Shown here in pieces: positions 7,101-19,100 of a DNA stretch of 33,941 nucleotides. Source of the DNA: Salpingoeca rosetta (Eukaryota > Protista > Choanoflagellata); assembly GCA_033442325.1 (NCBI GenBank), contig JAWQFM010000006.1, positions 1,961,361-1,995,301 on the forward strand, written 5' to 3'. The position numbers were made by a program, and so were the translations under genes. How positions within the stretch are numbered: position 1 is the stretch's first letter; every line of letters begins with the position of its first letter. The notes under the pieces were generated by a model. It ran no database searches, was not told the origin of the DNA, and worked only from the letters and a program-made list of their open reading frames with translations.

Positions 7101-10100
7101 GCATGGCCCGCCCAACGCTCGGCAGGCGGCCAGCAGCACCATCCAGTCCGCGATAGTGGCCCACGTCCTGCTGCACATTGTCCTCGTGGAGCGGGTTCAT
7201 TGGCACCTCGTGGTGGTCCAGGCCAGTGGCCACGCCCAGGTACAGGCTGTGGCGGTCCTTGGTGGGCGATGCGACAATGTGGCCAAACTGCTGCTCGCGC
7301 CGAAGTGCGTCCTCGTGCGCCTGCAGCTCCACATCCCGCTTGCGTCGCTGCTTCCGGCGATGCACCAGCAGCAGCACAACCAGCATGATGAGCACCACGC
7401 CGCCAACCACGGCAGGGACAATGGGAACAATGAGGGCAGTGGACCCCTCCGCTCCCGGTGGCGCCAGCGACACCGTTGACGATGTCGACGCGGCGGTTAT
7501 CGTCGTCGTCGTCGTACCAGTCGCAGGCGGCGCTGTTGTTCCCGGCCCAGCGGTCGTGGTCACAGACGGCATTGGTGACGCAGCAACCTGCGAGCCTTCA
7601 AAGTTGACCTTCATCTGGTCCTGCTGCACCGCATACGCGGTTTGGTCTGCAGAGCGGCCGTCAGCGTGCACGACATCCACGCCCACGCTGCCGCGCGAGA
7701 ATGTGATGCGCACCACCAGCGACGGCGGCACCCCCGCAAACCGCCACAGGCCGTCCAGGACAGCCGCCTCCAGCGCAGCAAGGCGCGTGGCATTGCCCAC
7801 AATTGCGTCATAGTCCAGCGGCAGCAGGAACGACGTTGTCAGGGGCTTCTCGTCCACGCTGCCGGGTTGATCACACACGCTCGTGTTTTGCACCACGCCC
7901 ACCAGCGGCGAGTAGCCCTGGGGCTTTGATACGGCAGCCGCCACGTGGGCGCCCTGCCGTGCTTGACCGTTGCTGTCAGCGGCAAAGGTGACGTTGGCGA
8001 GCTGCGAATCCAGCGCGGTGTCATAAGCAGGGGCATCGTCCACGTGACGGGTCATAAACAGGAGCCGGTCAGGGGAGAATGCGCCCTCCGTCGACACGGT
8101 CAGCTGCACAACCGAGACGCCCCCGCTGATGTTGGTCGGTGGCGTGTCACCCAAGGGAATCACCGTGCGATACAGCGACGGCGCAACGGCAAAGGGGACA
8201 GCGGCCTGAATCCACGCGCCCGCGTATCCGTCTGGTTTCCCCGGTGACAGCAGATCTCCAGCCAGTGGCTCCGCGAGTGTCCAGTTGGCTCGCTGTGCGT
8301 CGCCGGAACCCGCTGCTGGCTCAATGTCGAACACGATTGCAGTGTCGGTTGGACTCGCAGCTTGGTGCGACGCAGTGAGCGCGAGCACAGACACCTCCAG
8401 CAGGCAGCCGTCCGGGGACGGCAGCACTCGCACGCGCGGCGCAGACACGAAGCGCAGCAGGTCAAAGTTGACGGCTGCAAGGAAGGACACATCCAGCACA
8501 TCAATGTGACCATTGACATTGGCGTCCATGACGCGCTTCTCGTCTGCCGACAGCGAAGACCGGTTCACGGCGGGATCCACAAGCTCGCGGCCAAGGAAGC
8601 GAAGCAGGGCGCCCGCGTCCTTGATGTCAAACACGCAATCGCACAGCACATCACCCAGCATGCGCGGCTCTGGGCACGATGCAGGGTCGCATGGCGTTGC
8701 ACGCCGTGCACGCAGCAGTGACTCGCTGTCACGGGCAACACGACCATCAGCAGCGGCAGCAGCAACAGCAGTCGCCGTGGTGTCGACGGCACTGTCACGA
8801 CGACGACGACGACGACCGGGGGTGCTGGCCGTGCATGGTGTGGTGGTGGCGTTGCTTGCAGCCGTGCCGATAACAACATCGACGCTGCCAGCAACAATAG
8901 CACGCGGTGTGGGCGCGCCAATGGTCAGCTGCTGTGATGAGGCATCAGCGATGGTGTTCACAACGCCGTGAATGGCGGTGATGCATCCAGAAGTAGAGTT
9001 GGCACCATTCTCAGGCGCAAGAACGCGGAAGCGGAGCGTGGCGACGGTCAGGACGCCAACCGCAGCATTCTTCTGCAACAGGCCGCCAAAGGATGCCACG
9101 CCCGGTGGGCTGTTGAGAGAAGCCACAAACACGCCGCCTTCCCACAAGGACGACGTTTGTGCAATGGAGACCGCCTGAAGGATGGTGGGGTCGTACACAA
9201 TATCGAGATCAAGGGCTCCCAGCACACTGGCACCAGCGCTGACGCGCACGGGCACGTCGAATGTGGCGCCCGGCTGCTGTGCCGGCACCGGCACCCCAGA
9301 CAGCGACCCGAGATCAACATCCCCATCCCCGGCTTGCAGGTTCGCAGCAAACATCCGGCTCCCCATCGCGCCTCCTACCGTGGCCCGCACCACATACTCA
9401 AGCTCAACAGCGCTGTTCCCAAGCAGCGTCACTGCGCCACTCGCGCCGTCAACCGCAACGGCCCCGCTGCTGTCGCCCCTCACAGAGAACGCCACCAGCC
9501 CACCAATGCGTGCGCTCCCGCTCCCGCTCACATCAATCAGGTCAGCGTACTTGCGCCCGTCGCTCAGCACAACGTCCACCTGGCCCCGTGACACGTGGCC
9601 CACCACACCAACCACCGTCCCCGCAAGCGTCAGGCCCTCAAACCCAACAACACGCACAGACGTGTTGGTGGCAGCAACGTCGGCCCGCGCCACAAACTGG
9701 CTCACTGCGCCAGCCACGCGCGCCTCCACGCTCGCGTTCCCAAACGCCGTGCCAGCACCCGTGTACGACACAACCGTGCCGCTGCTCACACGCACCACAT
9801 CGCTTCCAGCAACCACGGAGTAGCTCACCACAGCCCCGTCCGTGCTCACGTCAACGCGCTCGCCGCTCGTCAGCACCAGCACCGTCTCCAGCACAGCCTC
9901 CTGCCACACCCCCGTGTCTGCGTATTGCTGCAGCTGGTGCACCTCCACACCACGGGAGCCGGCGTACGCGGGCCACGGCCGCAGCCGCGCCTCCACGCTC
10001 GCCGTGCCGACAACGGTGATGTTGATGCTGTGCGTCACGCTCACGTGGCTGAAGCCGATGGTCAGGGTGCCTGTGCCCGTGAGGCCGGCGCTGTTGGTGG

Positions 10101-16100: not shown

Positions 16101-19100
16101 AAGCACACGCCACGACGTCGCCGTCGTTGTTGGACACAGTGATAGGTGTGCTGTCCTCATCAAATGCAACGAGCGACACTGGCGAGTTCACGGCTTCGCC
16201 CGTCAAGACGGCGCTGTTCACCAGTTGGGCGGCAGGGATCATGGCAGCAAAGCCAACGGTCTGTGCTGGCGCGAGGAACACACTCGCGTCGCCCACACGC
16301 ACGCCATCGCGGCCCGATGACACGGCAGCCACTGGCGTCACGAGTGGCTGCTGCTTCTCCACGTTGAACAAGCTCAACACCGTACAGCTGAGAGCCACCT
16401 CCGCCGCTGTTGTGGCGCTTGCGTTGGCGCCCTGTGTCCATGCGTCCTGTGGCTGCACCGCAACCGTGAGGGTGAACAGGAGCTCTTGCTCTGGCGCAAG
16501 CTCGGGGCGGTCGCCGAGTGGCAGGCCGTTGCCGACAACGGTGCTGGTGCCCTCACCTTGCACTTGTCCATCCCACGCGCTGTCCACGCTCATCTGCGTG
16601 ATGACCAGCTTGTCTGCATCGTCAGCCACGCTGCAGCGGACCTGCCACGTGTTCACGGGGTAGTCACCGCCCTGCGCATACACGGGCACCTGGAACGTTG
16701 CGCCGGGTCGCACGGGCCTGTGCGGTGCACTGAACCACACGCCACCGCTCCCAGCAGCGCCAGTGGCCATCAATGGAGAGGAAGCCGGCGCTGTGGAGAG
16801 CGGCAGTGGCGGCGACGACACCTGCTGTGTGGGTGTGGAGCCAAGCCCATACGTCACTTGCACAGCGCGCTCTGTGGTGTTGGAGAACCACTCCTGTGGC
16901 ACCGACACCCGCGCCCAGCAGGCGCTGCGCGTGGTGCAGGATGCCGTGACAGCCGGCACGGACGAAGTGAAGTCGACCGGCGTGACTGCGATGGACACTT
17001 GCGTCTGCTGCGTGTTTGTTGAGTGCAAGGCATCCCGCACAACAAGGTGCACGTTGACCTGGGGCGCATCGTGCCACAGCCGCTGCGTGGCCACTTGCGC
17101 TTCCACGCTGACAGCGGGGCTGCGCTGGAGGGTAAACGCCGCCTGCGCCTCGGAGTCGCCAAGCACAGCGCGCAGGTTACCGTTGTCGGCGTTGAGTGCA
17201 TCGACAAACACACCCACTTGCCCGCGTGTGCCTGCCGGCGTCACCGTTGGCAGCTGTTGCTCAAGGAGGTAGCCCAGACCCGTGTTGCTGTTGACGGTGG
17301 CGAGCGGCAATGTCGCGTCTGGTATGCGCCCGCACTCGCGATCTGACGTGGCCGTGGGCAGGACTAGCTCCACTTCGCCTGGCTGGCACGCGGTCAGGTT
17401 GGCGCAAACCGTGTCCTGCAAGATGGTGCAGGCTGTCTTCGTGTACATGTCGCTTGTGCACACGGTGCAGTTGTCACACACGCGGTCACTTGTTGGTGTG
17501 GGCGCGGCGTCCTGGAATGTGCCCGGCTCACACGGGCCGCGGATGCGGGCACAGTCGCGATCGGATGTGGGCGTGGGCGCGGTTGTCTCGTACTGCGTAG
17601 TCGTGTTGCACTCACGCACGCGCTGGCACACGCGTGCGCTGCTCAGCGTTGGCGGGTCAAGCTCGAAGAACACGTTCGTGTCGCAGGCCGGAAGGCTGAC
17701 AAAGCACTCGAGCGAGGACGTGGGGTTGGCAAACAGCTGGAGCGGGTGGTATGGTGTCGTCAGGTCAAACGTGTAGGAGGTGGCGGGTCCAAGCTGCAGC
17801 TGATACATGAAGGGACTCCCAAACTCCACGGCGCCGGTGCTGTTGGAGATGCGCACAGCACGCGAGTCTGATGTCTGCGGCGGGCTGCTCTGATCCACCG
17901 TCACCTGCAGGATGGTGAGGCCAACGTCACCGAGGTCAAGGCTGGTGAACATGTCTACGCTGTGTGGCACGGGTGTTTCGTTGTCTCCCATGTCATCACC
18001 GCCTGAGGGAACCGCCGCCTCAGCTTGGAAGATGGCGCCGTTGAAGGTTGGCGCACCCTTGTCGGCGACGACCACTTGACCACGGGTGACTGCGCTATTG
18101 TCAAGGGCCGGGCGCAGGCCCGTGTCGCGTGATTCCACGTCGAAGAACAGGAACGTGCGCTCTGGATCGGGGACGGTGTTGCCAGCACCCAGGGGCGTCG
18201 CTGAGATCCTGAGCTGGCACGCCACGGCTGCATCTGCTCCGGAGGCAGGCGACTGCGCCACCGGCGTCACCGTCACGTTGGTGATGAAGTGCAGCTGCTT
18301 GAAGAGGACGCGGATCAGGTACACGGGATCAAAGTCATCCACACGCCCGTTGATGTTGGCGTCCATCTGTTCATAGCGGTCTCGGCTGTAGTCGCTGCCA
18401 AAGCTGGGGTCAAACGTGCGCTTGGCCAGGAAGGATTGCACGAAGCGCACATCTGCGAGCGTGAAGCAGCAGTCCTCGTTCGCATCGCCCAAATGGCGGC
18501 CACCAGCGCACGGCAGCCCCGTGCACGGGGCATCGCCAGCGCGGCGGTGGCGCTCACGTGGCGCAACAACAGGGAGCAGGCTCCGGCTCCAGCCCACGTC
18601 ATCGCTGTCGCTGACGTCAAGGCCAGCAGCGCTGCGGCGACGACGAAGGTTGCCGTCGAGGATGACCATGGAGACGTTGCCAGCAACAAACGCGGTGTCA
18701 GGCGCCACAATGTCGAGGGATGCATCGTCAATGAGCTCGATGATGGTGCCGCCGAGTGTGATGAGGGCAGGCGGAGCAGCGTCATCCGCAACGCGGAAGC
18801 GAAGCACGGCCACTTCCTGCGAGGAGCCAGACACGCCGTCTGTCGTCCCGCCAAAGAGGAGCACGCCAGGGGGATCGTTGGGGGTGACCAGGAAAAGGCC
18901 TTGGCCATAGGCGGAGCCCTGTGTCGCACTCACGTACTCGAGCACATCGGGTGGATAGGTGACCTCCAAGCGCAGACCAGCCACCACCTTGGCTGTGCTG
19001 GTGAGGCGCACGGGCACGTCGAATGTGGCGCCCGGCTGCTGTGCCGGCACCGGCACCCCAGACAGCGACCCCAGATCAACATCCCCATCCCCGGCTTGCA

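Follow-up and report, generated by a model that had tools for sequence, protein, structure and literature searches.

The 33,941-nucleotide (nt) stretch of the Salpingoeca rosetta genome analysed here (contig JAWQFM010000006.1 of assembly GCA_033442325.1, positions 1,961,361 to 1,995,301 of the forward strand; hereafter the window, whose own numbering is used throughout) carries on its minus strand an open frame of 6020 amino acids (aa) coding for a predicted giant surface protein, in which a cohesin domain is joined to a dockerin by a short linker at three places. The question raised by this locus is why each of the three linkers contains two motifs resembling furin sites. A sequence-only reading of the interval 8698-18645, which extends from the codon of the Ala residue following the second site of linker 3 through the first Arg codon of linker 1, had attributed the motifs to selection on cleavage rather than to chance Arg runs, and had proposed that the linker is either a disposable tether letting cohesin and dockerin fold together or a peptide released by the cutting. 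The analysis described below suggests that each cohesin-linker-dockerin module is probably a convertase-processed clasp, from which the tether would be removed while the resulting fragments would stay held together by cohesin-dockerin binding in cis.

Paired basic sites in the three linkers

The double sites quoted in the earlier reading are all present in the translation. With the predicted cuts marked by arrows, linker 1 reads RRRR↓SAAGLDV...RERHRR↓A (the last Arg being aa 1987), linker 2 reads RRRR↓SVLHAEA...RARR↓A (aa 3622) and linker 3 reads RRRRRR↓DSAV...RARR↓A (aa 5267), the distance between the residues preceding the cuts (P1 to P1) being 31, 25 and 32 aa, respectively. Cleavage at the arrows would excise peptides of these same lengths (Table 1). 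The P1' position, i.e. the one following the cut, is occupied by S, S and D in the first sites and, as had been stated, by Ala in all three second sites, each of which is followed by a Cys-rich leader and then by the dockerin calcium loop GDxNxDC. Each pair of sites sits exactly between a cohesin and a type I dockerin. The spacers are unrelated to one another, which agrees with the earlier description and can be seen directly in the translation, and the linkers also lie outside the block of 333 aa, described below, that modules 1 and 3 have in common. The possibility that the linkers are introns was rejected, as they are in frame, contain no stops and have edges formed by Arg codons conserved in every paralogue.

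Predicted excised peptide 2 contains a polyQ run. The CAG/CTG repeat coding for it (13651-13671) draws cross-mapping reads and chimeric contigs from other loci, so the read depth at this position is not evidence of expression.

The scan for RX[KR]R motifs returned hits at aa 1953, 1984, 3594, 3619, 5230-5232 and 5264, which form six clusters of the R-X-[K/R]-R type with a permissive P1' residue, as is characteristic of convertase substrates. All the clusters of the 5688-aa ectodomain are located in the three linkers, and the sole other motif of the protein is the cytoplasmic juxtamembrane sequence RRKQRRKR. When the ectodomain was shuffled 20,000 times with its composition preserved, the mean numbers expected by chance were 0.71 clusters and 0.003 pairs, the probability of obtaining at least six clusters being 1e-4, and three pairs of sites 15-50 aa apart occurred in 0 of the 20,000 shuffled sequences.

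Recurrence in paralogues and in homologues from other assemblies

The S. rosetta genome searched comprises 55.4 Mb in 68 contigs. A protein search of this genome revealed 19 module copies, and a search with the module profile gave 25 matches representing about 21 distinct modules, which are distributed over at least 12 giant open frames with a length of up to 7568 aa. Paired sites are present in about 18 of the 21 modules, with a typical layout consisting of RRRR, mostly followed by Ser, then 15-52 unrelated residues, often with polyS or polyA, and then RxRR, mostly followed by Ala. After the second site the paralogues possess a leader of the form CxxPPCxxC and the sequence GDxNGDCxFD. Two of the 21 modules have a single site, represented by an eight-Arg run in L037 and by RTRR alone in L039, and one more, L044, has weak dibasic sites only. 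Over all the modules the spacers, which are low-complexity stretches (polyS, polyQ, polyA) unrelated to each other, have lengths of 0-52 aa.

One paralogous module, L042/L045 (G000:C24:798181-803444), is split by an assembly gap inside the linker, where RRRRR-SSSSS... is followed by a run of N and then by ...RARR↓A; low-complexity linkers of this kind seem to be hard to assemble. At the L019/L038 locus (G000:C18:137513-141997), about 15 consecutive Arg residues and further Arg runs are found in the same giant frame downstream of the module, outside any cohesin-dockerin linker.

Giant homologues with 24-33% identity were found in other assemblies by a word-index search, namely P0001, P0002, P0003/P0021, P0005/6, P0026 and P0027. 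All of them contain TMEM132-type Ig domains and most contain cadherin repeats. Taken over their entire length, these proteins have nearly all their RX[KR]R motifs in the connector between cohesin and dockerin, usually in pairs: this applies to five of the six motifs in P0001, to all three in P0002 and to both motifs in the 1835 aa of P0026, where RKRR↓S is followed after 16 aa by another RKRR↓S. Where only one of the two sites is strict, as in several modules, a weaker basic site such as RRR↓S, KR↓S or ARR↓E stands at the other position. The spacer of module 1 in P0001 is reduced to 4 aa, and both sites have been lost in module 2 of P0002. A word-index search with the 272-aa module alignment, covering proteins of 150-476 aa, gave no match, a result that merely mirrors this range of lengths.

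When the data were pooled, with the approximately 53,000 non-linker residues of the same giant proteins serving as a control, there were 50 site clusters per 3,710 connector residues against 18 per 52,894 other residues, which is an approximately 40-fold enrichment. The pair of sites is thus a feature of the whole family, found in most of the paralogous modules as well as in most modules of the distant homologues, and this strongly supports the proposal of selection on cleavage as opposed to chance Arg runs.

Conservation of the two sites

Column counts were obtained from an alignment of 24 modules, which was also used as the input for AlphaFold2 (AF2) and is shallow, with only these 24 sequences. 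Eleven columns are invariant, one of them being the P1 Arg of the second site and six being residues of the dockerin calcium loop and helix. The second site has Arg at P4 in 23 of the 24 modules, R or K at P2 in 22, Arg at P1 in 24 and Ala at P1' in 13, with 12 different residues occurring at P3. The first site is RRRR in most modules, its four positions being 79-92% Arg, and is followed by Ser at P1' in 13 of the 24; the register of its logo is shifted by one, the true P1 being R153 of the module sequence. Few columns of the module are as well conserved as the Arg positions of the two motifs, and P3 and the spacer vary freely. Judged from these columns, the conservation is that of the furin-type consensus R-X-[K/R]-R, as selection for convertase recognition predicts and as a generic basic patch would not. 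The sequence-only reading had named an ortholog alignment as a check on its proposal and unconserved second sites as one outcome that would speak against it; the second sites proved to be conserved, including the P1 Arg in every module aligned.

Identity of the flanking domains and predicted structure of the module

The three cohesins of the window match the Pfam model Cohesin (PF00963) with 50.5, 31.2 and 43.1 bits (cut-off 24.1), and such a match is found in 18 of the 24 aligned modules. The predicted fold of the module 2 cohesin resembles that of type I cohesins as well (Table 1), so the domain is recognisable both by sequence and by fold. The match to type I dockerin (PF00404) in the window is below the threshold, with 19.5 bits against 22.9, and five of the 24 modules match this Pfam model. 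When compared with the Protein Data Bank (PDB), the dockerin profile of the modules retrieved type I dockerins with E-values of 5e-9 to 1e-6 and with both F-hand repeats aligned. The G, D, F and D columns of the dockerin are invariant in the alignment, and its two helices were modelled with a predicted local distance difference test (pLDDT) score of about 93-96. The duplicated calcium-binding loop-helix motif of type I dockerins is present, as is a TMEM132-like architecture with a cohesin and a transmembrane helix.

The AF2 model of module 2 from cohesin to dockerin (272 aa) has a pLDDT of 85.4 and a predicted template modelling score (pTM) of 0.82. The only segment with a pLDDT below 50 consists of residues 155-180, the peptide between the two cuts being residues 154-178. 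A longer model of 473 aa, which includes the beta-sandwich following the dockerin, has a pLDDT of 77 and a pTM of 0.75, with low confidence at residues 152-199, in short stretches at 397-402 and at both termini. The pTM of 0.82 corresponds to the ordered fraction of both domains taken together, whereas a score of about 0.5 would be expected if domains of 148 and about 90 aa tumbled independently, so the dockerin is probably fixed on the cohesin in the model. We infer from this that the cohesin and the adjacent dockerin would form a cis complex behaving as one rigid body. The idea of a disposable tether that lets the two domains fold together fits this predicted rigid body, in which disorder is confined to the stretch between the sites. 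The sites themselves are predicted to be exposed, given the pLDDT below 50 between them and their ectodomain position, N-terminal of the transmembrane helix and amid EGF, TNFR and Somatomedin-B domains. A Foldseek match to the "CLIPPER" domain was set aside as not relevant, this being an isopeptide-bond domain of bacterial adhesins.

Convertases of S. rosetta

The proprotein-convertase P domain (PF01483) was found at four loci of the S. rosetta genome. One of them, L002, combines an S8 catalytic domain with the P domain and has furin as its best match in the PDB (3.5e-40), followed by kexin; another one, L001, codes for an S8 domain, a P domain and a furin-like Cys-rich region. On the evidence of these domain combinations, S. 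rosetta encodes furin-type convertases.

Organization of the giant protein and other features of the window

The protein consists, from its N-terminus, of a Somatomedin-B domain, four EGF domains, three TMEM132-like ectodomain units, a transmembrane helix and a cytoplasmic tail. Each unit ends with a cohesin, a linker, a dockerin, a beta-sandwich and TNFR-type Cys repeats. In the 6020-aa frame, the Pfam search recognized Somatomedin-B, the four EGF domains, Ig domains 4-6 of the TMEM132 type, TNFR Cys repeats and the transmembrane helix, together with three Cohesin domains that pass the threshold and one Dockerin that does not, and revealed no cadherin repeats. In both unit 1 and unit 2 the score of Ig_TMEM132_4th exceeds the cut-off, and those of the 5th and 6th domains of unit 1 and of the 6th domain of unit 2 fall just short of it; unit 3, which matches no TMEM132 Ig model, was assigned by its similarity to unit 1. 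As these assignments indicate, the ectodomain is a triplicated TMEM132-like unit. The coordinates of the features are listed in Table 1.

Table 1 Features of the giant protein gene, with positions in the window
Feature	Window position	Strand	Evidence
Giant open frame, 6020 aa	6439..24501	-	Translation, Pfam
Module 1 cohesin, aa 1798-1952	18646..19110	-	Pfam Cohesin E 3.3e-13; module hidden Markov model (HMM) match
Site 1a RRRR↓S, aa 1953-1956	18634..18645	-	Translation, motif scan
Predicted excised peptide 1, aa 1957-1987, 31 aa; ends in site 1b RHRR↓A (18541-18552)	18541..18633	-	
Module 1 Cys-rich leader and dockerin, aa 1988-2071	18289..18540	-	Module alignment, HMM, dockerin profile
Module 2 cohesin, aa 3445-3593	13723..14169	-	Pfam Cohesin; AF2 pLDDT >90; Foldseek type I cohesins, template modelling (TM) score 0.69-0.75
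Site 2a RRRR↓S, aa 3594-3597	13711..13722	-	Translation, motif scan, module logo
Predicted excised peptide 2, aa 3598-3622, 25 aa; ends in site 2b RARR↓A (13636-13647)	13636..13710	-	
Module 2 Cys-rich leader and dockerin, aa 3623-3716	13354..13635	-	Pfam Dockerin_1 E 0.0011; PDB dockerin profile E 5e-9; AF2 pLDDT 89-96
Module 3 cohesin, aa 5052-5229	8815..9348	-	Pfam Cohesin E 6.3e-11; module HMM match
Site 3a RRRRRR↓D, aa 5230-5235	8797..8814	-	Translation, motif scan
Predicted excised peptide 3, aa 5236-5267, 32 aa; ends in site 3b RARR↓A (8701-8712)	8701..8796	-	
Module 3 Cys-rich leader and dockerin, aa 5268-5350	8452..8700	-	Module alignment, HMM, dockerin profile
Transmembrane helix, aa 5689-5713, then basic stop-transfer sequence RRKQRRKR	7363..7437	-	Pfam/motif scan

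Modules 1 and 3 share a near-identical block of 333 aa (aa 1500-1832 and 4754-5086, corresponding to positions 19006-20004 and 9244-10242), with 2 aa differences and about 98.5% DNA identity over 1020 nt, the remaining parts of the modules being about 30% identical. This near-identity suggests recent gene conversion or assembly collapse. The block takes in only the first 27 aa of the cohesin and stops about 120 aa short of the linkers, and linkers 1 and 3 are therefore not copies of each other.

Every dockerin is followed by an all-beta domain of about 170 aa (positions 12751-13353 in module 2), which was modelled with a pLDDT of about 90 and has no Pfam match. It contains a conserved Cys residue near the start and the motif GYxPL near the end, and in one homologue (P0003:2188-2676) a Kunitz domain is inserted into it.

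An AG dinucleotide at about 24503, directly upstream of the giant exon and behind a (CA)n-rich stretch, is a likely splice acceptor, in which case the exon coding for the signal peptide should lie further upstream. A long (CA/TG)n microsatellite adjoins the giant exon on its upstream side at positions 24549-24740, and a candidate for the first exon, which would code for a hydrophobic N-terminus, is located near 24830-24915. A run of N representing an assembly gap extends from 26164 to about 26960 and is flanked by (GA)n arrays; it accounts for the dip to 34% GC at 25-28 kb, so that this dip is only apparent and does not mark a compositional island.

Proposed processing and its alternatives

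According to the processed-clasp reading, a neighbouring cohesin and dockerin would fold and bind in cis while still joined by a disordered loop of 25-50 aa. In the late secretory pathway, a furin/kexin-type convertase would cut at the RRRR↓ site that directly follows the final strand of the cohesin, and a second cut at RxRR↓A just before the Cys-rich leader of the dockerin would remove the loop, leaving the tether trimmed flush at both ends. The 6020-aa precursor would be converted in this way into four chains (from the N-terminus to cohesin 1, from dockerin 1 to cohesin 2, from dockerin 2 to cohesin 3, and from dockerin 3 to the transmembrane helix and tail), which would persist as a complex after the cutting and be kept in register only by the three non-covalent, calcium-dependent cohesin-dockerin joints. 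Placed in the stalk of an adhesion protein or receptor, such joints would hold strongly and yet come apart, and could be used for force-dependent release, shedding or subunit exchange.

Several points weigh against this reading. Double cutting is not obligatory, as there are modules with one site or none (L037, L039 and module 2 of P0002). The cleavage is a prediction from motifs and conservation, and the consensus of the sites is that of furin, from which the specificity of the S. rosetta convertases may differ. The cis complex is deduced from the pTM of a model built on the shallow 24-sequence alignment, and the co-folding of tethered domains can be over-predicted by such a model. The exon for the signal peptide was placed upstream of the frame by inference from the likely splice acceptor. 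Transcript support is thin, and expression may be weak under the conditions sampled, with 3-13 RNA reads per run on the gene in three RNA-seq runs, part of which are cross-mapping CAG repeats at polyQ codons, and linker 1 is covered by none in any of the three.

As regards the role of the two sites, it could be suggested that they are redundant, the selected function being a single chain break, with the second motif kept as a back-up and the excision of the loop having no role of its own. One cut suffices to separate the chains, and the eight-Arg run of L037, the lone RTRR of L039 and the 4-aa spacer in module 1 of P0001 are in line with this. Nevertheless, some two thirds of the modules or more retain both sites, in the paralogues as well as in the assemblies with 24-33% identity, the sites occupy fixed boundaries at the cohesin end and the dockerin leader with distinct P1' preferences (Ser and Ala, respectively), and the segment predicted to be disordered would be trimmed flush on both sides, so we regard pure redundancy as unlikely. 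Since the tether is unconserved, varies from 0 to 52 aa and is sometimes represented by one Arg run or a 4-aa spacer, chain scission rather than a bioactive peptide appears to be the selected outcome, and the second site may be kept either for redundancy or for loop removal. The same facts tell against the excised linkers being the product, for instance secreted signalling or antimicrobial peptides made in a prohormone-like manner. The paired basic sites around 25-32 aa do resemble prohormone processing, but the spacers are unrelated, of low complexity and absent in some modules, where the pair is merged into one Arg run, and conservation is confined to the flanking Arg motifs; release as a peptide, which had been put forward as the other possible function of the linker, is thus very improbable.

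It is also rather improbable, though less so than a peptide product, that the protein is a polyprotein whose fragments part after the cutting and whose cohesins and dockerins then pair in trans to build a cellulosome-like extracellular network. With about 21 modules in at least 12 genes there would be many possible partners, every internal fragment would have an N-terminal dockerin and a C-terminal cohesin, and the bacterial cohesin-dockerin systems are known to act in trans. Against this, the high AF2 scores suggest that neighbouring domains are already bound in cis while the chain is intact, and since the dissociation of cohesin from dockerin is very slow, such a pair, once formed, should last. 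Finally, the Arg clusters might be left uncut and serve as basic patches for glycan or membrane binding, or simply reflect hinge composition, given that Arg runs can bind polyanions. This can hardly be the explanation, however, considering that, as in the convertase consensus, P4, P2 and P1 are held constant and only P3 varies, that the second site is usually a plain R-x-R-R rather than a patch, that such motifs are rare in the rest of the giant proteins (18 clusters) and that furin-like enzymes are encoded in the S. rosetta genome.

Relation to known systems and significance

The predicted clasp shares features with several known systems, of which the furin-processed receptors and the autoproteolytic GAIN and SEA joints come nearest in function, and ENaC, RSV F and proinsulin nearest as regards the double cut. 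Like Notch S1, FAT1 and the LAR-type receptors, it has a convertase site in an exposed loop of a large ectodomain and would give a non-covalent multi-chain surface receptor; the processing of the FAT1 heterodimer is discussed in PMC3953070. It differs from them in that the chains would be held by cohesin and dockerin and not by a Notch heterodimerisation domain, in that there are three joints per protein, and in that two cuts per joint would remove a loop. The GAIN domain of adhesion GPCRs and the SEA domain of mucins and dystroglycan likewise provide a strong but separable non-covalent stalk joint, thought to be a mechanical release point; those domains are autoproteolytic within one fold, whereas the clasp would depend on an external convertase and on two separate domains to hold the chains. 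In the alpha and gamma subunits of ENaC, in RSV F (pep27) and in proinsulin (the C-peptide), a connecting segment is excised through a pair of basic sites 25-45 aa apart, and the proinsulin connector serves folding and is then discarded. The folds are unrelated to those considered here, and the excised tract of ENaC is inhibitory and conserved in sequence, in contrast to the unconserved spacer of the modules.

The two folds are the same as in bacterial and archaeal cohesin-dockerin systems, including single proteins with both modules, and the ESM Atlas contains bacterial clusters carrying both the cohesin and the dockerin Pfam families. The S. rosetta modules are distinguished from these by their eukaryotic context, the CxxPPCxxC leader, a Cys residue in the first calcium loop of the dockerin, the pair of convertase sites and the absence of cellulolytic enzymes. 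Cohesin-dockerin pairs are among the strongest protein-protein joints and, to our knowledge, have been studied almost only in bacterial cellulosomes. The closest architecture is that of TMEM132, coherin, lefftyrin and hedgling, which combines TMEM132-type Ig domains 4-6 with cohesin in giant holozoan surface proteins (PMC6030884). The window protein differs in having no cadherin repeats and a triplicated unit, and by descent it belongs to this TMEM132/coherin-type architecture. In the same paper, high rupture forces of cohesin-dockerin complexes are cited, dockerins are described as not detectable in vertebrates and cleavage is unmentioned. No description of paired convertase sites between cohesin and dockerin was found in the searchable full-text literature.

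The conserved connector, if cut by convertases as predicted, gives the cohesin-dockerin pairs of choanoflagellate and early-animal surface proteins, the family behind TMEM132, a concrete and testable role, namely that of a pre-assembled, non-covalent and probably force-sensitive joint in giant adhesion proteins of the organisms most closely related to animals. It would also represent a natural design for self-assembling split proteins, in which folding in cis is followed by the cutting of the tether. It is conceivable, although we put this forward only tentatively, that pre-animal holozoans built separable multi-chain adhesion receptors from a cohesin-dockerin clasp of bacterial type and double convertase cuts as an independent, modular counterpart of the GAIN, SEA and Notch heterodimerisation joints, and that the approximately 21 clasps of S. 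rosetta could let giant proteins swap fragments, giving a combinatorial surface similar to that of cellulosomes. Should the cleavage prove true, these modules would constitute a new kind of processed receptor joint beside Notch, GAIN and SEA, and would suggest that the convertase processing of adhesion receptors is older than animals.

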